Of a stretch of 64,000 nt of DNA, positions 24,901-63,903 are shown one piece after another. Location of the stretch: positions 13,826,001-13,890,000 of the forward strand of contig CM106586.1 in assembly GCA_048013815.1 (NCBI GenBank). The letters run 5' to 3'. The notes under the pieces are model-generated. The model was given only the letters and a program-made list of their open reading frames with translations, had not been told where the DNA came from and searched no databases. The position numbers and the translations under genes were made by a program. The DNA is from Setoptus koraiensis. Its lineage: Eukaryota > Animalia > Arthropoda. The first letter of the stretch is position 1. Each line of letters starts with the position of its first letter.

Positions 24901-26774
24901 CAGACCAGTTGCATCAGCACCAGAGAAATGACGCAACTGTGTCGCCAGAAATCCATCCAGATTCACAGGGCAGACTGGCGCCAACGACAATAACAAGCAA
25001 ACAGTCACTTAGTCACAAACAACGGTCCTGTAACGAAGTGCCCAAAGCAAGCAATGATTTGTTGTCGGTGCCAAGTCAGCATCGTCACACATCGAGGACC
25101 CGTGGCTCGCTCTGCCGGTCAGACTCGGCCACAAACAGGGACCTGTCGTCGAGGCAGCAATCGGTGGCCATGCTGGCGAAACAACAATCCAACGGTGACA
25201 GACGCAACAGCAGCGCCAGCAGCAACGGCAATCAGATCAAATTGACCTCATCGTCCAGTGACATGGTTAAAATGAGACCAATGCGAGGCGGCTATCATGA
25301 CGATCGCGACAACAACAACGACGACGACGACGACGACGACGCCGACGACGATGAAGACGACGACAAACTGAAGCCAATGATTGGCTTCATGTACGAATCG
25401 CTGGCCGCCGAACTCAAGGCCAAACTGGGCAATCCCGAGGTGGGCCCGTTGCTGTTGCCCCCGAAAGACTATGACACAATGAGCAGAAAACAGGGCAAAC
25501 TGACCGGAATAGAGCTGCGTCGCTCCACCAATACCCAAATTGTTGGGCCAAAGATTGTGTTGGACGAGGCCGACGATCTGATTAACGGGCACAACAACGC
25601 AGTGTTAGACAATCACGACACAGGCACCGTTAAGACAGGCTCGTGCAGCGCCACCAGTGTTAGATTGGCGAGCGCCGGAAGTAGCATAGGCAGCGCGGGC
25701 AAACGGGGCCGTTCGGAGGGTTCGGTTTCGGCGCGCTCAAACGGTAGCTCGTCCGGTTTGGGATCGTCGTCTATAGGTGGCGCGTCGTCGTCTAGCGGCG
25801 AGGATCTCAGTCAGAGCCAGGACCATCATCATGATTACGATGAGCAACTACGAGGCGATCACGAGGTCAGGTCGGCCAGCACGGCGGGCAAGACGCTGAC
25901 GGGGCCAGCAGCAACAGCAACAGCAACAAGTGTGCATGTTAACGGCAACACAAGTGCCAAAAAAGCACCCGCCAATAACGGCGACACGAGCGTTGATTGT
26001 TTGCTGGCGGCCAATGTGCCAAAAAAGCCGCCCAGAGTGAGCGTGAATTACGTAAGCGGCGGCGGCGGCGCCAGCAGCAACGGTTACAATGATAATAATA
26101 GTAGTGAAACTGGAAGGGATAACAAATCGGCACAACAACAGCAACAGCAACAACAGCAACAGCGACGCGATAAACAAAGAGCGACGGACATTAGACAGCA
26201 ACAATTTGATAGTTTACGCGGCGAAGAGGAGATATTTTTGCGTGATACAAGCAAGCAGGTTTACTATTATTCCGCCAGTCAGGCCAGCTCGAACGGCAGC
26301 GATTCTTATCAGAGCCGAAGTTCCTCCGCTAGCAACGGCGCCGACGAGCATCGGGTTAACGGCCCGTCGGCGGGCATGACCAACAATGGCCAGGCTGCCG
26401 CTGCCAGCAACAAGCAGTCGGCCGAGTGGAAAAAAACAATTATTAATAACAACATTACGACAACAACAACAACGACAGCCAGCGCAAACAAACAAAAGAG
26501 CAAGGATAGCAACCTGTTCGCCTTAGAGAAGCAACAGCAACAGCAGCAGCTCAACAGCGATCAGCGAGCCAACAACCAATCAGCGATTAAGCCAATTAAA
26601 CAGCAAACAACAGGTGATAATAGTAATAACGACAGCAATAACTCAAGCAACAACAACAACAGCGCAACAATAACAACAGAGAGGCTGTGGCACGGCCGAG
26701 TGGAGGTACCCTTGAAGATCAACAAAAACAGAAGCGACACCACGTATTTGGCCACCAAGCGGATCATATACTGA
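21969..26774 (+). CDS. PTB/PID-domain adaptor-like protein, 1601 aa, single ORF, Q/H/N/S low-complexity rich
   Basis: The N-terminal region has a PTB pattern: YYVYYLGS..., VTLQINDKGLKI, HFIPFDNISYV, LHCHAYRCDSQLTASALTDQL. Two more high-complexity islands follow: MYESLAAELKAKLG..PLLLPPKDYDT (from 25389) and the C-terminal VEVPLKIN..YLATKRIIY. The reading frame is uninterrupted for 4.8 kb. Confidence 0.85.
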   Translation: MMSFTSSPSSLTKNNSNQTCNNNINVIINHSNGSKTSSNKKSYYVYYLGSQEALGLRGEQFCLQVLDRLLRQPQVAPSTVTLQINDKGLKILQQQPTKDYQLAVNSSNLANECKQKGASLTRSSHSSNCNLSDNQPNNNNTNNSASKSSLAGLSNNKSNKQIKHFIPFDNISYVCQQNDIVSCILLLYNPKTKCPLHCHAYRCDSQLTASALTDQLNSYILKGSQQKKLDLIERKLLAQGVIKGSLTCEEPSSSPLIIGAHPGHQQPVTIMPIHAPVPQVMRVPAATAQPIVGVLPKSIPSNQRQLMQANKIMMMQQQQQQQHHHHHLHQKIPMSMAHHLHAGEGAGAALPTTPSSIHSAMGVAPEGAQTRSGHHDNQLVVIVNDDDQLNGRDSEPIIGRRLPNKSMHALAYQESQQLFSNSCSAVSSVSNGVVYHALPVSGQPVAGHHLAPILKTPKQANEHQLAGMATMGHNINDIINQQQQTQMPVVVGRRSYRPQAVMPAPFASANYPAPSQQQQFDGRHQQQHSRGSSINYHNQYQQQALTAEQAIAIATSSADEQRGLDHHRHHRRHHHAQHQRQQQQLHHHSDLSLNYAANPSAVRGKEPLNYARDSARTSAAGSVSGSSSNLHQQPQIGQLRSGRLEQAGLVKSLSSIHQSRYVNRRPVRHSGRPDGDHEVCSLSSSYSSLCSSYSNCDVNSLDSRSRSPSQCSRCSSCSLSQQQQQQQQRPSSRSRRRARSGPLCADQTAGDLHTMSTGNNNSKLLIGDAPPPTKWRHRSTSSHHGHQLNHHKQQQQQQQMLLTGADRQPMSPQSHQLGNGPVAGAMRRGSSSPSFDLMQQTHQRYQHRHHGHSHHQQHHQQQHPLHRVNGARANGMMHSPGAHLSNADDLARMQSGGRTVQQPFADCPVPGQQHNRHDQHHHRHRSRQQNNATNQLLNQDNPQQQQQHRHNRRPHHHHHHHHHHNHAHNRSTTPSTQADQLHQHQRNDATVSPEIHPDSQGRLAPTTITSKQSLSHKQRSCNEVPKASNDLLSVPSQHRHTSRTRGSLCRSDSATNRDLSSRQQSVAMLAKQQSNGDRRNSSASSNGNQIKLTSSSSDMVKMRPMRGGYHDDRDNNNDDDDDDDADDDEDDDKLKPMIGFMYESLAAELKAKLGNPEVGPLLLPPKDYDTMSRKQGKLTGIELRRSTNTQIVGPKIVLDEADDLINGHNNAVLDNHDTGTVKTGSCSATSVRLASAGSSIGSAGKRGRSEGSVSARSNGSSSGLGSSSIGGASSSSGEDLSQSQDHHHDYDEQLRGDHEVRSASTAGKTLTGPAATATATSVHVNGNTSAKKAPANNGDTSVDCLLAANVPKKPPRVSVNYVSGGGGASSNGYNDNNSSETGRDNKSAQQQQQQQQQQRRDKQRATDIRQQQFDSLRGEEEIFLRDTSKQVYYYSASQASSNGSDSYQSRSSSASNGADEHRVNGPSAGMTNNGQAAAASNKQSAEWKKTIINNNITTTTTTTASANKQKSKDSNLFALEKQQQQQQLNSDQRANNQSAIKPIKQQTTGDNSNNDSNNSSNNNNSATITTERLWHGRVEVPLKINKNRSDTTYLATKRIIY

Positions 26775-48497: not shown

Positions 48498-49253
48498 TTA
48501 CTCAATTGTTTGTACAGGTCTGATTAAATCGTTGACATAATCGCGAGATTTCATGTAGATCTTATTTAGATCTCGAACAATTTCTCCCTCATAGTTGAGA
48601 TTCTTTTTGTCGCAATTGAGTTTAAATATTGCCTCAGCCTCACGAAGAAATACACAATATCTGGCCGCTCGCTTCATTATTTGAACCTGAGTCTCTTTGT
48701 CATTTTTGCCTGGTGTATTATCGCTCAGGGTTCTCACCATTGCTTGCAATTGTCTGTGGCGGTTCTTCTCCACTTCGCGGTGACGCAATTTTTTGTTGTT
48801 GTAATTTCCATGATTAGCGTAATAATGATTATTTTGTTGGAAGTTTCGCTCACGTTCCTCCTCTTGCTCTTCCTCGTGTTCTTGTTCTTCTTCTTGCTCT
48901 TCCTCCTGTTCCTGTTGTGGTTGGTGTGGTTGTTGCATATCTAATTGTTGCTGCTGCAGTAATTCTTGTTGTTGCTGAAATTCGTGTTGTTGTTGGTGAT
49001 GTAATTGTAGCTGTAAATCATGTTGTTGATGATGTAAGTGTAACTGCTCTTCATGAAATTGTTGTTGTTGAAATTGAAGGTGCTGGTGATACTGATTTGC
49101 CTCGCTATAGGGGCAGCAATCTTGGTTTAATCTACAACTGAGCAAAAGGCAGTAATAATGTGCCGAAACCTCTTGTTGCGACATTGGCTCGTACATGTGT
49201 GCCATCGTGTTGTCATAAAGAGTGCACTGATAATTTTTGGTTATCATTGACAT
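48498..49253 (-). CDS. Divergent bHLH protein with poly-Q/E N-terminal half, 251 aa
   Basis: The segment KKLRHREVEKNRHRQLQAMVRTLSDNTPGKNDKETQVQIMKRAARYCVFL fits the basic-helix-loop-helix spacing (H..E..R, L, P, loop, helix 2). Confidence 0.75.
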   Translation of the reverse strand: MSMITKNYQCTLYDNTMAHMYEPMSQQEVSAHYYCLLLSCRLNQDCCPYSEANQYHQHLQFQQQQFHEEQLHLHHQQHDLQLQLHHQQQHEFQQQQELLQQQQLDMQQPHQPQQEQEEEQEEEQEHEEEQEEERERNFQQNNHYYANHGNYNNKKLRHREVEKNRHRQLQAMVRTLSDNTPGKNDKETQVQIMKRAARYCVFLREAEAIFKLNCDKKNLNYEGEIVRDLNKIYMKSRDYVNDLIRPVQTIE

Positions 49254-50049
49254 CTTGACAGATTAATGAGGCGCCTTCGACCAAATATATCAATTTATTT
49301 TTGGAATCAAACATATGAATTGAACAAGTGGACGAATAGACTGGTTAACAGTTGGACTATTGAGGATAAAAAAATGCTTCAATGCTAATGCAAATGCTCA
49401 ATTTCAACGCTGCTTGAACAACGAAAAAATTTTTCGTCTGACTGTCAAAAAAATTAGCCGGTCTGTCAGTCGACTTTGAGCGCATTGTGTGAAAATGCGC
49501 ACACACAAAAAAATTCTGACAGATTTTGTGCATGTAACAGTCGTATTCTGGAGTGCTTCTTCAGATAAGAATAGTGAAGAGTTGATTTGAAATGCTTACT
49601 CAGACAATATGGCGTGCTCAGCTCAGTTAATTATGCTCGAGTGCGCCAAAATGATTCACAGGCGTTCGCACATCTAACGTTATGCGTTGCGTAAGTTACG
49701 TTTTTTATACTGTGCTGGACTAAATTTCAATAAAGAAAACAAATCGGTCCCAGACACACACAAAATTGGTGCTGAAAAATCGTATTGCTCGTCAGGTCGA
49801 GACGTTTCGGTTTTCGCCAGTTCCAATCGCTCGCATTTAATTTTGATCTACACTGTATACTCAAGTAGTCAATCCGTTTTTCAAATGTGAAACCGGAAAT
49901 TGCGTAATCTGAATAAAAAAATTACAGTTATGAGAAAATCTAGAGAGAGATCGATCCATTCTACGTGAGAATATGAAAAATAAGCCTTGAACACACTATA
50001 TTTGGAACGATCAATTTTGTTCGGTTTAATAATTACAATAATCTCGGAA

Positions 50050-53000
50050 TTACTTCCGTCGCCTTCTGAAATATCTACTAATATTGAAAAATCGAGCTAA
50101 TCTCGACCTCCTTGGCGGTGGCTCCTCTATACTCTCATTTGAGCTACTTGAAGAATCTAGGCTGCTCAAGCTAGACGACGAGGATCTATTTAAACGACGC
50201 GCAGATCTTGGACGTCTTGAGTATGCTCTTCTGGGAGTTTTCACATTTTTGATCCTAGTTCCTCTCGGCGAGCTTTTGTTCCGCTGAGGGCTTCGGGGTG
50301 ACCCTGTTTGTTCACTTGACGATTCAGCTATACCTGGATCATTGAAAATATTAGACACATCAGAGCTATCGCTAGAATGAGAATTTTCCCTGGATATAGT
50401 TCGGGTGGTCTTTTTATGTACAGTTTTTCTTGTTGTTTTCCTAGTTCTACCTTTAACGGTCTTTTTTGTTTTAGTTCGTTTGGCAGCTTTACGAGAGACT
50501 GATCTTTTAGTGGCACGTTTTCCGGTCGATCTACTTCTCGATTTGCGACGTAATCTAGGAGAATCCTCCAATTCATGTAGTACAGCCACTATTCTGGGCT
50601 GCCCTCTACTACGGCTACGTCTAGGTGTTACTCTTTTTCTAACTCTCGAGTTTTTTGTCGTTTTTCTTCCTCGCACACTCTTGGCCTTCCTTGTGTTTTT
50701 TTTCTTTCTATTGCTTGAATCACTTTGTCCGTCTTCGCTCATTTTGTTTTCGGAAGATCCGGTGTGCTGGGCGGTTGACGAAGATGTTGACCCATTCGTT
50801 TCTGATGATTTTGTCTTTATTTTAACCCTGGACTTTGTCAGACTGCCGCCGGATTTCGATTGGCTGTCAGACCCACCAATTTTTTCTCTGGTCTCTTCGA
50901 CATCAGGCTCTTTGGTTGATTCACTGGAGCGATCACTACTTTTAGCTCTCTCGACTTGATTAATGGTCGCATCTTGAGGCTTTTGAACCTTTTCGGAGAT
51001 AATACCACTAGCGCCTCCATCTTGTTGCATCCCAGGCCGTGATTTGTTTTCTTTACTCTCCAATTCTCTCTCAGCTTGAATTCTCTCCTCAGTTGTCATG
51101 GTTAGATACTGTGTTGTTTCAATCAATCTCCATCGGCGGCGCTTCTTGATGGCGGCCTCTTTGGCATTCATTCCTGGACCGTCCAACTTTTCCATATCTT
51201 CAATCACGGTTTCAGCTTGCTTTCTCTTTTCGGGAGGCAATCTAGCTGATACTTGTTGCGCTTGAGATAGCTCGGCCTCAATGAATTTTGTCAAGCGCAT
51301 CTCTGAATCAAGCCTGCGAATGTCTTTATTTGACTGTTGGGTTACCGAATCAATACGTTCTTGTGCCTTGTGAGAGGAAGTACTGCCTCGAATATCTGCA
51401 TCGGATTTGGAAACTGATTTGGAGGTGTCAGTTACTTTTTGAGCCTGGTCAGTAGAATTTGTGGTACTTTTGCTAGTGCCGAGTTCCACCTCTCGAGACT
51501 TTGTGCGGCCTGCTGTTGACTGCATGATAGATGCATCACTCATTTCTTTGGTATTTTTGTAGGAGACTTCATCGTCTGCGCGTTCTGCGTGTCGAGTCTC
51601 TGACTTCACTCTACTTTCTTGATTCTCCAACTCCTTCTCGGCGCTGATTCTTTCCTCGTTGGTCATAGTCAGATAGTGTGTTGTTTCGATCAATTTCCAC
51701 CTGCGGCGCTTTTTGATAGCTGCCTCCTTAGCACTTATTTCTGGACCGTCCAACTTTTCCATTTCTTTGATCACAGTTTCAGCTTGCTTTTTTTTATCAG
51801 GCGATAATTTTGATGCAACTTGTTGTGCCTGAGATAACTCAGCCTCGATAGTTGATGTGCGGCGAAGCTTTCCCTTCGACTGCTGGGTATCGAGGTCTTC
51901 GATAGGCATATCAGAAGTATCTTTGACACGATCGCGAGTGCTTGCATCAGATGGGGAAACCGTTTTTGTTTTGCCAGTCTCATTAGCCGAGATTGTAGTA
52001 CTCGTACTCATGGCGGGCACTTCATCGGGTTTCGCCATGGTGCCGGCGGCTGCTGAGTTTTGAGTAGATGCAGCATTTGTTTCCCCAGATTTCTCAGCAC
52101 TAGCGCTTGGTGTTTTTTTGGAGTCACGGTTGGGATCTGGAACCTTGCTCATCGTATCTTGAGCCACTGGCAGCGACTTGTTCGCGAGGTGATCCGAATT
52201 GTTCGGTGAGCTCTGTTGTAATTCTGTTTTGGTTCTGTTCGAACGTTCACCATCAATCGCTGCTTGCTCGGCTTGTTTGAGGGTCACCCCTTGAGAAGTA
52301 TCTATGCTATTGCTGCGATTGCTTGCATCAGATTCGAGAAATGCTTGGTCTCGCGCAGATGCAGTAAATAAAGGCCTCTGAGATAGAGTCAGTCTTCTAC
52401 CAACGGGGAAAGTTGGGTAAGTATTTTCAGGGCTACTTGCTGCTTCCTTTGCTTGTGTGACTGTTGCATCCTGAGGCGTTTCCATTGTGCTAGGGCCATC
52501 CTTAGCATTGGCTCGAATATTCGGTTCCATTTCAGAAACCGATCTAGCTTGTTGCGCGGAATCTTCATCTCGGCCAGTTGCTACGAATAAGGGCTTCTCA
52601 GATAGAGTCCTTCTTCTACCCGCAGCGATTTTGGGACTTTCAAGATTTGTTTGGTCAGCAGTTGTTGCTTGTTTAACTTTTGCATCTTGAGGCTTTTCCA
52701 CTGTTTCAGAGATTTCACTTGGAATACTTTGAATGCTTGACCCTGATATGGAAACTGATTTGGAGATGCCGCTCGCCTTTGAAGCTTCATCAACAGAACT
52801 CGCTGTGCTCGTGCTGCTGTCTTGACCCAATTTTTCGGGCATTTTGGGGCTGCCAGCTTTTGATCGCGTCGCAGATTTATCTGTTATTTCTTTCATCTCT
52901 TGAACATCGGTACTCGGTGGAATGGTAGTCTTACTCGTTGTTTCCTGAACAACGGAAAATGGATTACTTTGCAGATGATCTGAACTCTTTGCTTTAATTC

Positions 53001-54519
53001 GTGGTGACGGCCCTGCATCAGATTTGACCATTCGATCAGGCTGGCTAGTCTGGGAAATTTTCTCGGCGATGGCTAATTTTTGATCGGCAGGAGACTCACT
53101 ACTCCTCTTCGACAAGTCTGACGATTTTTTACTGACAATGGCCGAATCACTAGATCTACGAAGTTTGTCAGTAGATCGTTCGCTGGTAGATGTGTGCGGC
53201 TTCGAAACAAATGATGCGGCTGATTTTGACTCACTCGTTCCTTTGGATCCGGTCGACTCGACCTGCGACTTTTTTGGTGATTTGTTCAAGCTAACTGCTG
53301 TCTGTTTGTCTTGCTTAGTCATATCTCGAGACTTTCCCACAGTGTCCACGACGTTTTTCACATTAGCGCGAGTGCTTGCATCAGGTCTCGTAATTGATTT
53401 AGTGATGCTGCTGACTTTTTTCGCAGTAGTCTGTGAGGATACTTTATGTAGTTTTGGAGCGGTCACCTGATCTCGATTACTGGATTTCGTATCAACTTTT
53501 TTAGGTTTAGGTAAAGTTTTTGGTTGTGACGTTGTGGCCGGTTTTCTGGTATTATCTACATTTTTTGTTTTCGTGTCTTTTTTGACAGAGGAGTTCTTAC
53601 TCGTTTCAGATGCAATTTTAGGTTGAGGTTTAGGTAGAGACTTGGGCTCAGACTTTATTGTTTTGGTATTAATTTTCTTTGCAGTAGTTTTCTCAACTTT
53701 TTTCGCGTTCGCATTGACATTTTTTTGTGCTAACTGTTTGCCAGTCATCAGTTTCGATGCTTTACCTATCGAGCTGAGTGAACCATCCGAACCATGTGAT
53801 ACAATAGATTCGTGGGATCCGATAGAGGTCAACGATGATGATCGTCTTAATGGTTTAGGTATTTGTTTGGAGGCTCGCTCGACTTGCTTGGAAGTCTGCT
53901 TGATTTCCTTCCTTGAGACGTCTTTTACAGTTGCAGCCTTCTTCAATGGAACCATTCTACTTGATGGACTCAAATTGGCAGATCTGGATCGAGGGATCGG
54001 CTCCTTTACATCCTTCTGTTTCGAAGATTTTTGCGAAGAACCTCTGCTTCCAGTCGATCCCGTCGAAGTTGGCTTTTTAGCTCCCAATTTAGGCAAGTTA
54101 ATTTGACGGGGTGCACCTGATTTCGAAGTTTTGTTTGTTGGCACATTCTCTTGTTTAAGAGACTTATCGCCTTTTTCAGTGCGTTTAGGTAAAATGGTGC
54201 GTTTGAAATGAGGATTCTTTTTAGCCTGATAAACTATGCTGGTTTTGGATTTAAGAGTGCTTGATGAGGGCGTTGGGGATGAAGTTTGAGAGACCTTTTC
54301 GTCTATTGGTTCACTGAATGTTGGTAACAATAACGACGACGGCTGGCTCGTTACACCAATGATGCGATCGTTCGAGATCTCTCGCTTCCGGCCAGCTTTT
54401 AGTCTCTTGGTCAATATTGTTTCTATATCTTTAGCGACTCGCTTCAGTTTTGAGTCAAATATAAATTGTTCATCTGAGAAGGCACAAAATACCACAATTT
54501 GACTTTTGTATCGGAACAT
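50050..54519 (-). CDS. Giant S/K/T-rich protein A (1489 aa) with two 74-aa repeats and an Arg/Lys/Ser-rich tail
   Basis: A 4.5-kb open frame from ATG 54519 (MFRYKSQIVVFCAF). The repeats are at 51846-51625 and 51279-51058. It is paralogous to 55097-60127. Confidence 0.85.
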   Translation of the reverse strand: MFRYKSQIVVFCAFSDEQFIFDSKLKRVAKDIETILTKRLKAGRKREISNDRIIGVTSQPSSLLLPTFSEPIDEKVSQTSSPTPSSSTLKSKTSIVYQAKKNPHFKRTILPKRTEKGDKSLKQENVPTNKTSKSGAPRQINLPKLGAKKPTSTGSTGSRGSSQKSSKQKDVKEPIPRSRSANLSPSSRMVPLKKAATVKDVSRKEIKQTSKQVERASKQIPKPLRRSSSLTSIGSHESIVSHGSDGSLSSIGKASKLMTGKQLAQKNVNANAKKVEKTTAKKINTKTIKSEPKSLPKPQPKIASETSKNSSVKKDTKTKNVDNTRKPATTSQPKTLPKPKKVDTKSSNRDQVTAPKLHKVSSQTTAKKVSSITKSITRPDASTRANVKNVVDTVGKSRDMTKQDKQTAVSLNKSPKKSQVESTGSKGTSESKSAASFVSKPHTSTSERSTDKLRRSSDSAIVSKKSSDLSKRSSESPADQKLAIAEKISQTSQPDRMVKSDAGPSPRIKAKSSDHLQSNPFSVVQETTSKTTIPPSTDVQEMKEITDKSATRSKAGSPKMPEKLGQDSSTSTASSVDEASKASGISKSVSISGSSIQSIPSEISETVEKPQDAKVKQATTADQTNLESPKIAAGRRRTLSEKPLFVATGRDEDSAQQARSVSEMEPNIRANAKDGPSTMETPQDATVTQAKEAASSPENTYPTFPVGRRLTLSQRPLFTASARDQAFLESDASNRSNSIDTSQGVTLKQAEQAAIDGERSNRTKTELQQSSPNNSDHLANKSLPVAQDTMSKVPDPNRDSKKTPSASAEKSGETNAASTQNSAAAGTMAKPDEVPAMSTSTTISANETGKTKTVSPSDASTRDRVKDTSDMPIEDLDTQQSKGKLRRTSTIEAELSQAQQVASKLSPDKKKQAETVIKEMEKLDGPEISAKEAAIKKRRRWKLIETTHYLTMTNEERISAEKELENQESRVKSETRHAERADDEVSYKNTKEMSDASIMQSTAGRTKSREVELGTSKSTTNSTDQAQKVTDTSKSVSKSDADIRGSTSSHKAQERIDSVTQQSNKDIRRLDSEMRLTKFIEAELSQAQQVSARLPPEKRKQAETVIEDMEKLDGPGMNAKEAAIKKRRRWRLIETTQYLTMTTEERIQAERELESKENKSRPGMQQDGGASGIISEKVQKPQDATINQVERAKSSDRSSESTKEPDVEETREKIGGSDSQSKSGGSLTKSRVKIKTKSSETNGSTSSSTAQHTGSSENKMSEDGQSDSSNRKKKNTRKAKSVRGRKTTKNSRVRKRVTPRRSRSRGQPRIVAVLHELEDSPRLRRKSRSRSTGKRATKRSVSRKAAKRTKTKKTVKGRTRKTTRKTVHKKTTRTISRENSHSSDSSDVSNIFNDPGIAESSSEQTGSPRSPQRNKSSPRGTRIKNVKTPRRAYSRRPRSARRLNRSSSSSLSSLDSSSSSNESIEEPPPRRSRLARFFNISRYFRRRRK

Positions 54520-54886
54520 AAATTTCCACGAAAACAAACACTAACAATTAAATAGATCAGGTCAGTTAGATGATGTCGGTCCAGCAATCATCAGAGATTC
54601 ATGGGTGAGACAGTGAGATGATATTCAATTGTTGTTTACAACAAATTGACGTTGACTCGTGATCTCAACTAGCTAGCTTAATAATAAAAAATCACAACTG
54701 AGCAGACTATCTAAATCAAAAAAAATTATTGCACTTGATTATCTGTCTTGCCAATCTCGCGCTGATACACCTATCTTTGTATGTCGAGGAGAAAAAAAAA
54801 ATTCTCGCGGATCAAAGACTTTTCCAAATTATAAATGACAAATCATTATAGAATACGGATGAGATATTTTTTCTATCAACCAATGA

Positions 54887-55013
54887 GATCTTGATTGATC
54901 AAATGATCATAATTCATTTTATTGGTCTGACTAAAATTATATCAATCAAGATCAATAAGATTTTCTTATAAAAGTACCATTATAAAAGAACTAGTTGACA
55001 TCCATCAACTAGT
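54887..55013. promoter_or_regulatory. Shared divergent promoter elements: two inverted repeats and two TATAAAAG boxes
   Basis: 13-bp IR GATCTTGATTGAT (54887-54899) / ATCAATCAAGATC (54941-54953). TATAAAAG at 54967 and 54981. 9-bp IR ACTAGTTGA (54990-54998) / TCAACTAGT (55005-55013). Confidence 0.5.
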
Positions 55014-55096
55014 CAGATTGTCATCAGTGTCACCGTACTCGTATTTACATTATTGTATAATGTTAACTTACAGTCATCGTTACCACAACTATCATA

Positions 55097-58000
55097 ATGT
55101 TTCGTTATAAAGAATATATTGCGGTATATTGTGCCTTCTGTAGCACAAAATATATCTACACCAGCAGCTGGCAATCAGTCAGCGAAGAGATACGGATTAA
55201 GATCACAAGAGAGCTAGAAACTACCACCTATACTACTACAGTCACATCCGGCAGAAGAAGATCGCTATCTCAGAAGCCGTTGTTCACTGCTTCAGCCCGC
55301 GAAGAGCGAGCCGAACAACAAGCTAGAGTTGGTAAGAAAGATGTCACCATTCACGAGCGGGTAACCGTCACAAAAAGGATCGAAGGCGAAGAGTCAACGG
55401 AGCAGCAAAATGAGAATGCAAGAGCGAAAGCGAATCAATTTCGGACAACAACAACTAAGGTTACAAGGACTGTCGCTACAAAAACGGCAAGTGGCATCCC
55501 CAGAACAATTTCTAGATCGGAAACAGACATTCGCAACGTCGCAAAAGATATATCTGATTCAGCTGACAAGTCTAGAGACGCAACCACTAAACAAGCAGGG
55601 AAGAGTAGTCTCCAAACCACAAGTGAATATCTGAAAAAGTCGCAGCTAGAGACAAATGTGTCTAAAAAAGTGGACGAACCGGCAACAAGCTCTTCTACCG
55701 ACAAATCAAAGAGTAAACTTGATAAGTATAGAGGTCTGGGCAGCGCCAGTAGACAATTCTCTGCGACTCTAGCTGATTCCAAGACAGGAAGCAGCGCAAC
55801 AAAGCCCGATGAATTGGCGACAAGCAAGAGCACGGCAATAACCGTTGATGGAGCTGGAAAAGCCAGCCGCATCCCTAGATCTGCTTCAAAATCCGATGCA
55901 ACCACTAGCATCAGTGTCAAGGAGTCAACCGATATGGCAGAGAAGCCTCAGGATACGGCCTCTAAACAAACCAAGAAAACAACTCAGAGCACGAGTGAAA
56001 ACGTCGGAAAGTCACAGGTCGAATCGATTGCGTCGAAAAAAGTGGATGTAACGTCTGGTTCAACGCCAAGTTCCACCACCGCCGACAAAAAATCAGCTAT
56101 CAAACTGAGTAGATCAAAATCTAGTGCCAGTACTACGACTGCCGGAACTCGTGTTACAATGACAAAGACCACAACCACCACCACAACCACTCGTGATGGT
56201 CAAAAATTGAAATCAACCGTGCGAGAGTCGATTGGTCAGAAGGATAAGCAAGCCGAATCATCCGCTTCCAAATCGACGATGAGTACCTCGGGCAAACTTG
56301 GAACATCAAAGTCAAGCAATTTAGATATCTCCACTACACTGGCCTCTCAGTCGTCAAAGAAATCTAGCAAACCTGTTGAGAAAGCCAAATCGAAGGCAGA
56401 ACTGTCTCCACAAGCCAAAGGAAAGAGTTCAGACCATCTAGATGGCAAGCAAATGTCTGCAGTTCGTAAAACAATGAGTAAGCTTTCAACTTCAAAACTT
56501 GGTTCGAAAACACCATCGGGCGTTGATCTTGAGGAGACCGAAGATATAACTCACGCATCTATAGTGCAATCGAAACCGGGCAGCTTAACCAAGCCAGAAT
56601 GGGCCGCCAAGACTAGCAAGAGCACCGCAGATTTCGAAAGTGGGGCTCGAAAAGCGAGTGCCATCCCTAGATCAAAATCTGGTGCAGACAGCAGCAGTAT
56701 CAAAGAGACTTCCGATATTACCGAAATGTCCCAGGATGCAAGCTCTAAAAAAATCAGCAAATCAGAGATTCGAGACAAAAGCCCGATCAAGTCAGCAAAA
56801 AAATCGCAGCTCGATTCTAAAGGTTCTAAAAAAGTGGATGAAACAACAACAGCAGTATCGGCGTCTGGTTCCGCTGCCAAAATATCGACCAGCAAAATTG
56901 CTAAATCTAAATTGAGTGGCATGGATAATGCTGGTAAACAATCCGCTAAATCTACTCTTCAATCAAGAGGTGGCAGCACCACATCGAAGGAAGTAGTTTT
57001 ATCCAGGACTACTACAAGTTCTGTTGATCAGGCTGCGAAACCGATCGCCACCTCTAAATCGGTGTCAAAATCTGCAGATACCCGCAGCGCAATAAAGCCA
57101 GAAGAAGTGGCCGTCACGACCAGCAAAAGCACCGCAACTTCAACAGGTGGGTCTCGAAAAGCGAGCACCATCCCTGAATCAGCTTCCAAATCTGGTGCAG
57201 GTACTCGCAGCAGTGTTAAAGAGTCCTCCGACATGGCTGCAGTGTCTCAAGATGAGAGCTCGAAAAAAGCGAAGAAGGCAGCCAGCAGTGAACTGGGCCC
57301 AGCTAAATCGTCGAAAAAGTCTCAGGTCGACTCAACAGCAGCATCTGCGTCAGGCTCAGCACTGGGTTCTGCCCAAAAATCGAAATCTAAAACTCTGGCT
57401 GAATCGACAACAGCCTTCTCTGCGCCGAGTTCGGGTCTAAGCAAACTATCCATTACAGACAAAAAATCCACAAGCAAAATGGATCAGAGTGATTCGGCAG
57501 CGAAGAAGGCAGCCGGAAGTGATGTGGACTCGATTAAATCGCCTAAAAAGTCAAAGCTAGAATCAACCGCATCCAAGAAAGTGGACAAAACAACAACAGC
57601 AGGCTCGGCGCTGGGTTCTGACAAAAAATCAAGTACCAAAATGGACAAATCCGATTTAAGTGATTTAGACAATGCCAGTAAAAAGTCCTCTAAATCTGCA
57701 CTTCAATCGAAGAGCACTAGCTCCGTAATGAAGGCTGATGATAAGTCCGAGAAAGCGAGCGCCATCCCAAAATCAGCTTCCAAATCTGCCGCAGACACTC
57801 GCAGCAGTGTTAAAGAGTCAACCGACATGTCTGCAATGTCTTCAGACGAGAGCTCGAAGCAAGCCAAAAAGGGGGCCATTAGTGAACTGGGCTCGGCAAA
57901 ATCGTCGAAGAAATCACAAGTCGATTCAACTACGTCTAAAAAAGTTGCTGAAGCAGCCGAATCCGCGCCGAGTTCGGCACCTGATTCCACCAGTGACAAA

Positions 58001-60127
58001 AAACCAGCTAGCAAGATCGATATTCCCAAATCAGCCTCTAAATCTGCCGCAGACACTCGCAGCAGTGTCAAAGAGTTCTCCGACATGGCTACAATGTCTC
58101 AAGATGAGAGCTCGAAAAAAGCGAAGAAGGCGGCCAGCAGTGAACTGGGCTCGGCTAAATCGTCGAAAAAGTCGCAGGTCGACTCGACTACATCCAAAAA
58201 AGGTGAAAAATCAACATCAGCAGCATCTGCGTCAGGTACCAAAATGGACAAGTCCACTATAAATGATTTAGATGATTTGGACACTTCTGGTAAGAAGTCC
58301 TCTAAATCTGCACTTCAATCGAAGGGCGGTAGCTCCATGAAGAAAGCTGAGGAAGTGTCCGCCGAAACCAGCAAGGGCGCCGCAACTTCAGCTGATGAGG
58401 CTCGAAAAGCAACTGACATCTCCAAACAAGTTTCCAAATCCGATTCAAACATTCGAAGCCGTACTTCTTCTGGCAAACCAAAAGAAAGCGTCGATTCGGC
58501 GACGCAACAGTCAAATAAAGACCTTAGCAAGCTTGATTCCGAGACGCGCTTGACAAAGTTTATCGAGTCCGAGTTATCTCAAGCGCAACAAGTAGCAGCT
58601 AAATTGCCTCCCGAAAAGAGAAAGCAAGCTGAAACCGTGATTGAAGATATGGAAAAGTTGGACGGTCCAGGAATAAGTGCCAAAGAGGCCGCCATCAAGA
58701 AGCGCCGCCGATGGAGATTGATTGAAACAACACAGTATCTAACCATGACAACTGAGGAGAGAACTCAAGCCGAGAGAGAATTGGAGAGTAAAGAAAACAA
58801 ATCACGGCCAGAAAGTAAACAAGACAGAGGCTCGAGTACTACCGTCGAGTCACGTGTTATAACTGTCGAGTCAGAATTAGCCGAGGCCAATCGAATTGCA
58901 TCGAGGATATCCGGTGAAAAGAGGAAGCAAGCTGAAACTGTGATCACCGAAATGGAGAAGTTGGATGGAAAAGAGATAAGCGCCAAAGAGGCAGCCACTA
59001 AGAAGCGCCGTCGGTGGAGATTGATAGAAACAACGCATTATCTGACTATGACCACAGAGGAAAGAATCAACGCTGAAAAAGAATTGGAGACTCAAGAGAG
59101 CCGAGAAGGCACAGTATATTCGGAGAGTCAAAGTGTTGCAGGTACAAGTAAAGTATCCGATTCACGTTCTAGAACAGTTGAATCAGAATTAGCCGAGGCT
59201 AATCGAATCGCATCAAGGATAGCTGAAAAAAAGAGAAAACGAGCTGAAATTGTGATCTCCGAGATGGAAAAGTTAGATAGCTCCGGTTTAAGCCCCCTAG
59301 AAGCGGCCACCAAGAGGCGCCGCCGATGGAGATTGATTGAAACAACACACTATCTAAGCATGACCATTGAAGAGAGAATTCAAGCCGAAAAAAGGCTAGA
59401 AATTAAAGAAAGCAGATCGGAGAGCCTACAAGTTGACAAGAAAAGTTCTCTGGGTGGTTCGAGTGCTGATAGTAGGCTAGGGCTGTCCAAAGATCAAACT
59501 GCTGAAGCAGAGTTGGCGGAAGCCTATCGAATGTCCTCGAAGCTGTCTAATGAAAAGAGGAAGCAAGCTGAACTTGTCATCGCTGAGATGGAGAAATTTG
59601 ATGGTCCGGGTATAAGCGCCACAGAGGCGGCTATCAGAAGGCGACGTAGATGGAAATTGATTGAAACAACACACTATCTAACCATGACATACCAGGAGAG
59701 ACTGAGCGCCGAAAGAGAATTGGAGCGCCAGGAGAAGGAGGCCGAATTCGAAACAGACGCTGAATTCTTCGAAAAGAAAAACAAGAAACGCAAACAAAGA
59801 AACCGAGAGTCAATCTACAACACAAACGCTAAAAAAGTCTCTTCCAAGCAAGGTCGCGATGCAAGCCAGACGAGAATTGGTGGTGGGTCGTCCAGCGACA
59901 GTGTCGGAACTGATGATGAAGATCGAAGGAGACGAGATGAAGAGGACAAGCTTGGGGCCAAAAAGAGGAAGAGGAGGAAGAATGCACTCCAAGAGCTAGA
60001 GGATGATAGAAAGAAGAAACGTCAAGAATCCACCGTTGGAAAAAAGAAAAGCGCACCATCAACTCCGACGGGTAACAATATCACTGATGATGGTTATGAG
60101 AAAAAGAAGAAGAGGAAAGACTATTGA
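55097..60127 (+). CDS. Giant S/K/T-rich protein B (1676 aa) with four 74-aa repeats
   Basis: A 5-kb open frame starting MFRYKEYIAVYCAF. The 74-aa repeats start at 58565, 58868, 59180 and 59504. Additional internal SASKS(A/G)A(D/G)TRSSVKE(S/F)-type repeats lie at about 57.2-58.2 kb. Confidence 0.88.
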   Translation: MFRYKEYIAVYCAFCSTKYIYTSSWQSVSEEIRIKITRELETTTYTTTVTSGRRRSLSQKPLFTASAREERAEQQARVGKKDVTIHERVTVTKRIEGEESTEQQNENARAKANQFRTTTTKVTRTVATKTASGIPRTISRSETDIRNVAKDISDSADKSRDATTKQAGKSSLQTTSEYLKKSQLETNVSKKVDEPATSSSTDKSKSKLDKYRGLGSASRQFSATLADSKTGSSATKPDELATSKSTAITVDGAGKASRIPRSASKSDATTSISVKESTDMAEKPQDTASKQTKKTTQSTSENVGKSQVESIASKKVDVTSGSTPSSTTADKKSAIKLSRSKSSASTTTAGTRVTMTKTTTTTTTTRDGQKLKSTVRESIGQKDKQAESSASKSTMSTSGKLGTSKSSNLDISTTLASQSSKKSSKPVEKAKSKAELSPQAKGKSSDHLDGKQMSAVRKTMSKLSTSKLGSKTPSGVDLEETEDITHASIVQSKPGSLTKPEWAAKTSKSTADFESGARKASAIPRSKSGADSSSIKETSDITEMSQDASSKKISKSEIRDKSPIKSAKKSQLDSKGSKKVDETTTAVSASGSAAKISTSKIAKSKLSGMDNAGKQSAKSTLQSRGGSTTSKEVVLSRTTTSSVDQAAKPIATSKSVSKSADTRSAIKPEEVAVTTSKSTATSTGGSRKASTIPESASKSGAGTRSSVKESSDMAAVSQDESSKKAKKAASSELGPAKSSKKSQVDSTAASASGSALGSAQKSKSKTLAESTTAFSAPSSGLSKLSITDKKSTSKMDQSDSAAKKAAGSDVDSIKSPKKSKLESTASKKVDKTTTAGSALGSDKKSSTKMDKSDLSDLDNASKKSSKSALQSKSTSSVMKADDKSEKASAIPKSASKSAADTRSSVKESTDMSAMSSDESSKQAKKGAISELGSAKSSKKSQVDSTTSKKVAEAAESAPSSAPDSTSDKKPASKIDIPKSASKSAADTRSSVKEFSDMATMSQDESSKKAKKAASSELGSAKSSKKSQVDSTTSKKGEKSTSAASASGTKMDKSTINDLDDLDTSGKKSSKSALQSKGGSSMKKAEEVSAETSKGAATSADEARKATDISKQVSKSDSNIRSRTSSGKPKESVDSATQQSNKDLSKLDSETRLTKFIESELSQAQQVAAKLPPEKRKQAETVIEDMEKLDGPGISAKEAAIKKRRRWRLIETTQYLTMTTEERTQAERELESKENKSRPESKQDRGSSTTVESRVITVESELAEANRIASRISGEKRKQAETVITEMEKLDGKEISAKEAATKKRRRWRLIETTHYLTMTTEERINAEKELETQESREGTVYSESQSVAGTSKVSDSRSRTVESELAEANRIASRIAEKKRKRAEIVISEMEKLDSSGLSPLEAATKRRRRWRLIETTHYLSMTIEERIQAEKRLEIKESRSESLQVDKKSSLGGSSADSRLGLSKDQTAEAELAEAYRMSSKLSNEKRKQAELVIAEMEKFDGPGISATEAAIRRRRRWKLIETTHYLTMTYQERLSAERELERQEKEAEFETDAEFFEKKNKKRKQRNRESIYNTNAKKVSSKQGRDASQTRIGGGSSSDSVGTDDEDRRRRDEEDKLGAKKRKRRKNALQELEDDRKKKRQESTVGKKKSAPSTPTGNNITDDGYEKKKKRKDY

Positions 60128-60763
60128 AAAAGTCATTTCTGTCGCGTGCTTTTCTAGCACACACATTCAATTGAGCGTTGACTCATCGTGATTTACTGTG
60201 TAAAAATCTACAATTAACATGTATCGTTTGCATTTTTTTTTTCTTACAGCATCATACAAATAAAATGTATTTTCAGTCTATTAACAATTACTTAAATATC
60301 TAATTATTGTTAATATTTATTGTATCATTTCATTGTGTATTGTGTACGAAGATATTCATTATGCATGTTGTGAAGATGTGAAGACGTTGCTCACATAAAA
60401 TACACAGTTTTGTTTAGAAGCACTGTAAAGTGTATTGCAGTGAAATAACATCACTCAACCTAGTTGCTAAACTTTTTTCAGCGCATTACGCACTGCAATT
60501 GCAGACGATCTTTTGGTTTTGTAGCGACTAACAAATGAGTCGCAATTTTCTACTTCATTCGCATATTCTTTTTAACTAATTGACTTCGATTTTTATTTAT
60601 TTTAAATTTCGTTGCTCGCCACGAAAACAAGATATAAAATGCATCTTCGTTAGTAGATAATTGTCACATTGTTGAATTGGTTTGCTACTAGTAATTATTC
60701 CTCTTTTAAAATTAAACCCTGGTGATATTACGACATTATTTACCGAAAGTCGAGTTCTTAATT

Positions 60764-61537
60764 ATGACGACAACAGGTGCCACCGCAGATTCTATGAACA
60801 GTCAGACAAGCGGCGACACAATATCGTCGGCATTTGCACCAACAATGCTCGAGTATTATGATCATCATCATCATCACCATTCAGGTTGGGAGTATGAACA
60901 TTTGGCGAATATGCCTCTTATTCCCTATGGTGTCATACATCACACATCACTGACGACCACAACTCATCATACAACTATAAACACATCGGGTACCACTTCC
61001 AACGGTCCCCCTGCGGCTAATCTTATTTCAACTTCCATCGGTTGTGGCGATCATCAGCTAATTGATTTAGATCAACAGCAACATCAACAACTTCAACAAC
61101 ATCATCAACAACAGCAACAACAACAACAATCGACCTGTCATCATGTCAATCTTAGTAATAGTGATAACAGCAACAACAATAATGGTATCAACATAACCCT
61201 GAACGCTTCTAGTGCAACTAATTGTCTGGATACTCCAATCAAAGTGGAACCAACAGATGGCTCCGACGTCGGCGGGCAGCCTAATTTAAACAATACCTCT
61301 TCCTCATCAACAGTTGTCGGGTCATCTAATAGAGAGATGCACAATGAGATTGAACGAAGGCGCAGGCTCAGAATAAAATATTGTTGCGATATTCTGAGGG
61401 GTCTAGTGCCGGGTGTCAATGACAAAACCGACAAGGCAACTGTATTGGAGCACACTGTCAGATATGTGCGACATTTGAATCAATGTCCAAATTTTTCCTG
61501 CAATTGCGAACTCAACACAATGCCAGCTCAATCGTGA
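60764..61537 (+). CDS. TCFL5-like group B bHLH transcription factor, 257 aa
   Basis: REMHNEIERRRRLRIKYCCDILRGLVPGVNDKTDKATVLEHTVRYVRHL matches the TCFL5 pattern HN..ER.RR.RI..CCD.L..LVP..N..TDKAT.L as recalled. It has a poly-H/Q N-terminal region. The first ATG is at 60764. Confidence 0.82.
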   Translation: MTTTGATADSMNSQTSGDTISSAFAPTMLEYYDHHHHHHSGWEYEHLANMPLIPYGVIHHTSLTTTTHHTTINTSGTTSNGPPAANLISTSIGCGDHQLIDLDQQQHQQLQQHHQQQQQQQQSTCHHVNLSNSDNSNNNNGINITLNASSATNCLDTPIKVEPTDGSDVGGQPNLNNTSSSSTVVGSSNREMHNEIERRRRLRIKYCCDILRGLVPGVNDKTDKATVLEHTVRYVRHLNQCPNFSCNCELNTMPAQS

Positions 61538-61725: not shown

Positions 61726-62394
61726 TCACAGATACATTGGATCGGCTTTTGTGTAAAGATATCTGGCTACCCTCTGGAGAACCGCTCTACTAAATTGATT
61801 GTTTGCCCTCACTATATGAGGTGGTAACGCAACGCCTTGTTTATTTGTGTCTGGTCTTCTTCCTAGCATCGTGTACCCGTCTGGGCTTACCATGACTTGG
61901 TCCGGACCTACCTGAGGCATGGGTGGCATGGGTCTTATGGGCGCTGGTATGATGCCGACTCCGGCTCCCGCCCCGGCGCCGGCTACGGCCCCCCCCTCAC
62001 CGTCATCTTGGTCACGATTTCTTTCGGTTCTCTTAGAACTCCTATCTTTTGGCGATTCTTTTGGCCCCTCACCTTGATGGTAAATATGCTCATAATCGGA
62101 AGGAGCTATTGCCATTGTGGGCGCATTTGAGGGCATCTTAGGCATTCCACCGCCACCAAGGGTCATCTTTGGCAAAACATTTGCTGGCCGGGCACCGCTT
62201 CTATCCCGTGCAGAAAACTTTTGGCTCCTATTTTCTTCACGACCACCACTACGATCGGGTACATTCTTTGCAGCACCGGTGCCCTCGTGAAAAATGTGCT
62301 CATAATCCGATGGTGCAATGGCCATTGTAGGCGCAACTGAGGGCACCTTCTTCATACTTTCGTCCCGGCCCCGTTCTCGTTTCTTGGGACCCAT
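61726..62394 (-). CDS. Hypothetical 222-aa Pro/Gly-rich protein with a duplicated APTMAIAPSDYEHI motif
   Basis: ORF from ATG 62394. The two motif copies (about 62338-62282 and 62127-62071) differ mostly at synonymous positions, which supports real coding. Confidence 0.7.
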   Translation of the reverse strand: MGPKKRERGRDESMKKVPSVAPTMAIAPSDYEHIFHEGTGAAKNVPDRSGGREENRSQKFSARDRSGARPANVLPKMTLGGGGMPKMPSNAPTMAIAPSDYEHIYHQGEGPKESPKDRSSKRTERNRDQDDGEGGAVAGAGAGAGVGIIPAPIRPMPPMPQVGPDQVMVSPDGYTMLGRRPDTNKQGVALPPHIVRANNQFSRAVLQRVARYLYTKADPMYL

Positions 62395-62939
62395 GACGGA
62401 GAATAATCTTTCAACTGTTAGTCGAAAAAACAACTACCCTAAAAAGCGAAAGATGAAACAACAAAACGAGTCTCGTGCACTACTGTTCGGAAGTGATTGT
62501 GCTGATATCGAGTAAGATAGGCTCGCTTGCTAATCGATTAACTGAACGCCTCGTGCATATCGTCCACGCATCGTCATGTGCACGAAGTTTGTCCAAAACA
62601 TTCATAGAAAAACACTTGATTGCCACCATATGAGGCGCATTTGCGAAAGTTCTGGTCCTGATAACTTAGCTTTTTCGTAATTTTCACCAATACTACGCGG
62701 ATACATGTATTACATGTATGTACATGTATTATTACACTTAGGGACAGGTTTTTTCGTACGCTGGATCTTTCCGGGCTTATCTCTTTCGGGTAATTCTTTT
62801 TCAGTTCTTTTTCCGGCTGCACCTATCTCACTGTTGGACCCACCTTGAGTCCAAATATTCAGTCTCTCTGACTAAACTGAGTTGCAAAAACGAATAATTT
62901 TCAAATAAGTATCAAAGTAGAAGCGGACAAGTTTTTTCA

Positions 62940-63281: not shown

Positions 63282-63903
63282 GAGGATCATCGCATCTATA
63301 ACATGGATGGGACCAGATTATCTTGGAAAAAATTACCTTCGAAGACATGCCAGAAGAGGTACAAGAAGTTTTGGGACAAAGCAAGATAAGCAAGCCTTCA
63401 CGTTGTCATTCTCTGTGAGTATGACCGGAACCAAACTCAAGCCTATCATAGTTGGACATCATCAAAAGCCGAGGTGTTTCAAATCTATTGATTATAATCT
63501 GGACAGGCTTCCGGTACAATATTATGCCAATCGGACTGAATGGATGACATCAGACATATTTCAAGACATCATCTGCCACCTACACAAGGATTTCAAAGAT
63601 AGGCAAGAGTGCATGACATCATTACTTGACAGTTTCCAAGGACACAAAATTGAAGAAAGTATGTATCCACGCACAAATTTTCAATACTCACCTCCAAACA
63701 CTACATCCAGGACTTAACCACTCTATGGAATCATAAACTCTTTCAAGTGCCAATACACATCAATCCTTATGGACCAAATAGTCAGATATTATCAAAATAA
63801 CCAAACATTGAAACTTGAGGAAAAGAGCTTCGACCTCTATCAAGCAATCAATTGGGTCTCTGATGCATCATCGAGAGTGGGAGAGGCCACTATCAAGTAT
63901 TGA
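63282..63903 (+). mobile_element. Degenerate pogo/Tigger (DDE_1) transposase fragment
   Basis: IYNMDGTRLSWKKLPSKT, frameshift near 63355, then MTGTKLKPIIVGHHQKPRCFK..LPVQYYANRTEWMTSDIF..LLDSFQGH..PPNTTSRT*PLYGIINSFK. There is a stop at 63715-63717 and the third catalytic Asp is lost. No CENP-B HTH or TIRs are seen. Confidence 0.88.

Follow-up and report, generated by a model that had tools for sequence, protein, structure and literature searches.

Paralogous gene pairs that arise by inverted duplication can lie head to head, diverge in transcription from a short common spacer and, where gene conversion homogenizes them, retain near-identical patches within genes that have otherwise drifted apart. 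Two transcription factors from the bHLH (basic helix–loop–helix) superfamily provide further points of reference for the locus described here: TCFL5, a testis bHLH of vertebrates, and Myc, whose Myc box II (MBII) we take to have the hexamer DCMWSG at its core. This hexamer is present in the transactivation core of human c-MYC and in N-MYC (PMC10904854, PMC8628738). The locus lies in a 64-kb stretch of the Setoptus koraiensis genome (contig CM106586.1; hereafter the window, with all positions referring to the whole stretch), where two divergent giant genes are each followed, in their own direction of transcription, by a small bHLH gene. An initial annotation of the window read this mirror as an old inverted duplication of a cassette, structural protein plus transcription factor, driven from one central promoter and possibly serving a germline or sex-specific regulon. 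Our analysis indicates that the giants were very probably the only genes to be duplicated, and that their bHLH neighbors are independent genes joined to the pair secondarily.

Architecture of the locus

The four long open reading frames (ORFs) are arranged in palindromic order and orientation, just as had been annotated. The left giant (giant_L) occupies 50050–54519 on the reverse strand (running from an ATG at 54519 to a stop at 50050; 1489 aa) and the right giant (giant_R) 55097–60127 on the forward strand (1676 aa), the two diverging across a central spacer of 577 bp (54520–55096). Beyond them lie bHLH_L, at 48498–49253 on the reverse strand (251 aa), and bHLH_R, at 60761–61537 on the forward strand (ATG at 60761; 258 aa); both are uninterrupted, intronless ORFs that carry a poly-Q tract, again in agreement with the annotation. 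The giant-to-bHLH gaps measure 796 bp on the left, as given before, and 633 bp on the right, where the 636 bp quoted previously includes a stop codon. The symmetry stops at the outer flanks, as noted at the outset, with left and right flanking genes that are mutually unrelated.

The giant genes are inverted paralogs that still exchange sequence

The paralogy proposed for the giants is borne out by a common N-terminus, a shared repeat, a BLASTP match and inverted DNA arms. The two N-termini (MFRYKSQIVVFCAF and MFRYKEYIAVYCAF) follow the pattern MFRYK..I.V.CAF, a motif of the GRRRSLSQKPLF type is common to both proteins, and BLASTP aligns giant_L with giant_R at 71% identity over 184 aa (expect value, E, 1e-72). 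The repeat, of ~74 aa, is found in two copies in giant_L and in four in giant_R, where the copies span 58543–59740. At the DNA level, the best inverted arm pair extends over 471 nt at 87% identity (51007–51477 versus 58367–58837), and inside it lies a patch (51036–51241 on the reverse strand in giant_L; 58603–58808 on the forward strand in giant_R) in which 202 of 206 bases are identical. Because this patch is far more alike than the remainder of the two genes, we assign it to gene conversion; the giants are thus true inverted paralogs whose arms are still being homogenized. Apart from poly-Q codons in the bHLH genes, DNA similarity across the mirror is confined to the giants.

A sister species has kept the two giants head to head. 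On a 7.3-kb contig from another sequencing run (L006), the giant_L ortholog (P0064; 1500 aa, with the same N-terminus and basic tail) diverges from the N-terminal part of a giant_R ortholog (L006:1–687, reverse strand; MFRYKEYIVIFCAFCNTKYIYTSGW) that retains 65% identity over 116 aa, and the spacer between them is 589 bp, as against 577 bp in the window. Since orthologs pair with orthologs on this contig, the inverted duplication predates the split of the two species; as regards the giants, the earlier proposal of an old inverted duplication therefore stands. All that marks a head-to-head pair with conversion is found here: the genes are paralogous and divergently oriented, a relative has the same arrangement, and one tract is far more alike than the rest.

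In composition, giant_L is rich in S, K, T and R and ends in a very basic R/S/K tail, and giant_R is rich in S, K, T and A with internal S/K-rich repeats. A motif resembling a nuclear localization signal (KKRRRW) and a tail reminiscent of protamines or serine/arginine (SR) proteins would suit a nuclear or chromatin-associated role. Neither giant has a convincing Pfam domain, and a search of Protein Data Bank sequences with the repeat region gave no match; a Pfam hit to WHIM1 on the repeat was sub-threshold or arose only from summed scores, and we treat it as spurious. When one ~74-aa repeat was compared exhaustively with 1.84 billion representative proteins, a single homolog was recovered, the sister ortholog P0064, and a word-indexed protein search with the repeat likewise returned P0064 only. 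By these two kinds of protein search, the giants are found in this species and its sister only.

Three further observations concern the giants or their like. A motif resembling an RRxS kinase site, GRRR[ST]LS[QE][KR]PLF[TV]A[ST][AG]R, recurs in both proteins (55247–55330, residues ~51–78 of giant_R; twice around 52345–52623 in giant_L) and is kept in the N-terminus of the sister ortholog (L006:1–687). One contig of sequencing run X5 joins position 59265 to 59976, skipping 710 nt within the giant_R repeat array; the ends of the junction (GG..GA) make it unlike an intron, and the skip reflects a difference in repeat number or else a collapse in the assembly. A third giant ORF (21969–26771, forward strand; 1601 aa, uninterrupted), considered as a further paralog, has no similarity to giant_L or giant_R and no Pfam domain.

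The two small genes appear to belong to different bHLH families

It had been suggested that the likeness between the two small genes goes beyond generic bHLH similarity, a view to which motifs, profiles and DNA all run counter. Over 57 aa, bHLH_L and bHLH_R are 28% identical, and each bHLH domain is 65–89% conserved across dozens of species, in ortholog sets (21 clusters for the family of bHLH_R, the R family; 42 for that of bHLH_L, the L family) with zero overlap. We judged the separation of the families by profile cross-scores: domain hidden Markov models (HMMs) award 109–147 bits to members of their own family versus 5–17 bits to those of the other, and hhalign of the two family alignments reports a probability of 15%. 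The R-family HMM scores human BMAL1 (36 bits), ARNT (35 bits) and N-Myc (24 bits) above every L-family member.

The residues on which the supposed special likeness was built fare no better, with one partial exception. H..E..R and RY...L fall at positions that are standard for bHLHs; in PG.NDK, the PG..DK frame is indeed common to both families and only the N is specific to these copies; F..NC[DE] is part of a CPxFxCxCE tail that the R family alone conserves, and falls in a variable stretch in the L family. The coding DNA of bHLH_L and bHLH_R is similar only in CAG/CAA poly-Q codons, and the two giant-to-bHLH intergenic regions have no mutual similarity, such that the mirror does not continue through intergenic and second-gene DNA. 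From these comparisons, the small flanking genes appear to be members of two different, old bHLH families that were not duplicated together.

The bHLH genes reside at giant-free loci in other species

The neighborhoods of orthologs elsewhere lead to the same separation. In three species, R-type orthologs (L001, L009 and L013) stand in a row comprising a protein kinase, a gene of 345–378 aa, an inositol polyphosphate kinase (IPK), (a GTPase), the HLH gene itself and a Ser-rich gene of 312–361 aa. L-type orthologs, also in three species (L003, L011 and L008), have a conserved gene of 162–201 aa immediately upstream, and two of these three loci also lie near a kinase and a mitochondrial carrier. 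None of the L-type or R-type loci of the other species contains a homolog of the giant genes, and the 64-kb window holds no neighbor gene of either conserved bHLH locus, the 162–201-aa gene included; the synteny check called for by the initial annotation thus uncovered neither single nor doubled giant-plus-bHLH modules in relatives. The 162–201-aa gene is itself K/E/S-rich with a common start, MS.YKAQLLAVEAKLAKDP (L003:9210–9785, L011:9034–9639, L008:5734–6222).

On the sister contig L006, nothing in the 1.5 kb beyond the giant_L ortholog corresponds to bHLH_L or is similar to the window, and hence the adjacency of bHLH_L and giant_L is not seen on that contig. The ortholog of bHLH_R (P0001; E 4.5e-89) is present in the sister species on a further contig (L007), followed by the same gene as in the window, where that gene has 235 aa.

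These results bear directly on the possibility that an ancestral giant-plus-bHLH cassette was duplicated in inverted orientation, both bHLH genes descending from that one event and having diverged since. Such an event would explain at a stroke the mirrored order and orientation and the comparable gaps (796 and 633 bp), as well as the His–Glu basic region, the PG..DK loop and the poly-Q present in both small proteins. It fits poorly with bHLH domains that are 28% alike while their families hold to 65–89%, and that are no closer to one another than to human bHLHs; with giants found only here and in the sister species when the two bHLH families occupy different, conserved, giant-free loci elsewhere; with dissimilar intergenic regions; and with a sister giant_L ortholog that has neither bHLH_L nor any similarity to the window in the 1.5 kb beyond it. 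We regard a common origin of the two bHLH genes in this event as extremely unlikely. Separate bHLH families with separate orthologs were the outcome named beforehand as incompatible with a duplicated cassette, and that is the outcome obtained; what was proposed for the giants does not extend to the bHLH genes, whose families, orthologs and neighborhoods are all distinct. The four-gene palindrome offers no evidence that a structural gene was duplicated along with its regulator, and the proposed germline regulon thereby loses its footing.

bHLH_L is a divergent member of a Myc-like family

The bHLH_L protein has a poly-Q/E-rich middle and a divergent, predicted C-terminal bHLH, whose helix–loop–helix (residues 151–214; 48612–48803 on the reverse strand) is modeled by AlphaFold from the family alignment at a predicted local distance difference test (pLDDT) score of 82–94, helix 151–179 (basic region and helix 1) being joined by a loop to helix 189–214 (helix 2). 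Foldseek comparison of the model with solved bHLH structures (Myc–Max, CLOCK–BMAL1, Cbf1 and USF2) gives template modeling (TM) scores of 0.64–0.78, normalized to target length, and in Swiss-Prot it matches Twist as well as Myc and N-Myc, the last two being among the best structural matches, at 22–26% identity. None of the 42 ortholog clusters carries a precomputed Pfam domain; 42 of the 43 family members match Pfam HLH weakly (best E 3.3e-4, below the gathering score), and bHLH_L is the sole member of the 43 with no match even at E ≤ 1.

The N-terminus of the L family is conserved (MMGPYYYYD...HDCMWSGEC), and a DCMWSG-type motif, [DE]CMW[SA][GA], is found in 39 of 43 members; Pfam Myc_N gives weak matches in four of the 43 (best E 0.0033). 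The DCMWSG motif, the weak Myc_N and HLH matches and the structural matches to Myc and N-Myc lead us, on balance and with some reserve, to take the L family for a Myc that is derived and has become much shorter. A regular-expression scan of the family located no conserved motif resembling the Myc box I (MBI) degron, and no continuous leucine zipper is evident in bHLH_L, as the model breaks the helix at residues 215–221 before a further helix at 222–244.

The copy in the window has itself lost the DCMWSG box (SCRLNQ occupies the aligned place), and this loss, alongside its standing as the one family member in 43 that Pfam HLH fails to match at E ≤ 1, raises the prospect that the left ORF is a decaying bHLH and the fourth gene of the mirror a relic. 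We consider decay highly improbable: the 251-aa ORF is intact, its core is 83–87% identical to relatives with every invariant family position kept, and the helix–loop–helix model is confident. Degeneration of the box extends to the closest relative, P0022 (DVMWGQ), and this suggests a change across the lineage rather than decay.

bHLH_R is a canonical bHLH with a cysteine-rich tail

The right-hand protein combines a poly-Q/H tract, a canonical bHLH (61325–61483) and a C-terminal Cys motif, CPNFSCNCE. Its match to Pfam HLH (PF00010) is strong (E 6.9e-15), its 55 bits exceeding the cut-off of 20.7, and the model reaches a pLDDT of 92–96 over the domain. All 21 ortholog clusters of the R family carry Pfam HLH, and the family is marked by CC in helix 1 and by the CPxFxCxCE tail. 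In a Foldseek search of Swiss-Prot with the bHLH_R model, human TCFL5 ranks second (E 1.1e-3, 23% identity, TM 0.22); as this match does not stand out from those to PHO4, Myc and plant bHLHs, TCFL5 serves as a weak, model-based lead to the identity of bHLH_R and not as an assignment. A string search of the literature for TCFL5 bHLH peptides produced no match, feature searches of the ESM Atlas yielded generic HLH clusters only (all below 0.9), and an ESM Atlas fold search with the bHLH_R model returned nothing informative.

Regulation of the four genes

The central spacer is presumably a bidirectional promoter region for the giants; within 54520–55096 there is no CACGTG E-box and no notable self-symmetry. 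The wider idea that one central promoter drives the four genes together is unlikely; bHLH_R has a conserved non-coding block upstream that is its own. Non-coding DNA upstream of the bHLH_R ortholog on sister contig L007 aligns with the window, at about 71% identity around a 40-nt block (60478–60517, forward strand, ~245 bp upstream of the bHLH_R ATG) that is itself nearly invariant between the two species; this block is a candidate promoter or 5′ untranslated region (UTR) element belonging to bHLH_R. Across the whole 64 kb, CACGTG is strongly depleted, with two occurrences versus 15.0 ± 3.8 expected from dinucleotide-preserving shuffles (each of 100 shuffles had at least two, the largest count being 27).

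Separate origins would still allow the four genes to have been brought together and then kept in a common regulatory domain (common enhancers, for example, or read-through within a program tied to the germline or to a particular stage), the bHLH proteins perhaps regulating the giants. For this speak the low estimated probability of such a mirror arising by chance at a single locus, the conservation in the sister species of the intergenic region, bHLH_R and the downstream gene, and the fact that both bHLH genes have lost their ancestral neighbors in this lineage; the lack of a CACGTG E-box in the central spacer, the conserved element that bHLH_R has for itself and the left-side adjacency not being seen in the sister contig speak against it. 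We think a functional juxtaposition of this kind distinctly unlikely. We think it equally unlikely that two unrelated E-box-type bHLH genes, one Myc-like and deprived of its Myc box II, the other an orphan, were independently captured on the two sides of the giant pair and kept as a co-regulated four-gene domain; were it so, the locus would represent convergent assembly of a mirror-image regulatory module and not a duplication.

Outer flanks

On the left, the locus is bordered by an ABHD16-like hydrolase gene. The right border consists of a gene on the opposite strand and a transposase fragment. The gene (61726–62433, reverse strand; 235 aa, no Pfam domain) is convergent to bHLH_R and has 75% identity to L007:1964–2335 of the sister species. 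The fragment is an ORF at 63307–63717 with a match to DDE_1 transposase (E 5e-13), and this transposon remnant could be related to rearrangement of the giant/bHLH neighborhood.

Origin of the mirror

Our preferred reading, in which only the giants were duplicated, can be set out as follows. A single ancestral gene without introns, coding for a giant and intrinsically disordered protein that was basic and S/K/T-rich, would have been copied in inverted orientation before the sister species split, leaving a head-to-head pair around a spacer of ~580 bp in which both promoters presumably lie, and the 3′ halves, with their inverted arrays of the ~74-aa repeat, would continue to exchange sequence by gene conversion. 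The left small gene would be an independent, much older and fast-evolving member of a Myc-like family whose DCMWSG box was lost in this copy, and the right small gene an equally independent, much older canonical bHLH of another family. Both would have come to lie beside the giant pair by rearrangement of a compact genome instead of by cassette duplication, and both are probably transcribed from promoters of their own.

Several points weigh against this account. The sister contigs are short where they matter most: L006 stops 1.5 kb after the giant_L ortholog, which allows for a bHLH_L further downstream, and L007 begins within the intergenic region upstream of the bHLH_R ortholog, short of any giant_R. 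The species used for synteny may be distant, and any giants that they possess could have changed too far to be recognized; the outgroup for the bHLH families consists of three fragments, too few to resolve sisterhood. RNA support amounts to a single 219-nt contig at 59765–59977, inside giant_R, from the only RNA-labeled public run to hold any of the locus. The mirror itself is also improbable, since genes of one superfamily mirrored beside mirrored paralogs would occur by chance at about 1e-5 per locus, a rough estimate reasoned, and not computed, from ~45 bHLH genes among several thousand genes, orientation included. Taken over every divergent paralog pair and every large gene family, the chance of some such mirror in a genome would be roughly a tenth, and on that rough estimate the mirror is unremarkable when counted genome-wide and post hoc.

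Comparison with known systems

Set beside TCFL5, bHLH_R is alike in its canonical bHLH and in having TCFL5 as its second-best Swiss-Prot Foldseek match, and differs in that its domain profile scores best with bHLHs of the ARNT/BMAL1 type. TCFL5-like or not, it represents a second conserved bHLH family, one with a Cys-rich tail. What the L family has in common with Myc is an MBII core, letter for letter, close to the N-terminus and a predicted bHLH at the C-terminus whose basic region contains His and Glu, with Myc and N-Myc among the best structural matches and weak Pfam Myc_N matches in a few members. It departs from Myc in the shortness of its proteins (about 150–330 aa), in having His and not Arg at basic position 13 and in scoring below the Pfam HLH gathering score, and the motif scan and the model revealed no MBI-like degron and no continuous leucine zipper; the window's own bHLH_L has, in addition, lost the MBII core. 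What emerges is a widespread bHLH family, invisible to Pfam and bearing the Myc box II core, in compact arthropod-like genomes, probably the Myc of this lineage, with Myc box II lost in the present species and its nearest relative.

The giants find their closest counterpart in head-to-head paralog pairs formed by inverted duplication and homogenized by gene conversion. They differ from these in being orphan, disordered proteins of giant size with no known domain, and in that bidirectional promoter activity is presumed only. They agree with them in the short common spacer, the diverging transcription, the near-identical patch within otherwise diverged genes and an arrangement that the sister species has also kept, and so make a clean case of orphan giant-protein genes that stay head to head as a pair while gene conversion between their arms goes on.

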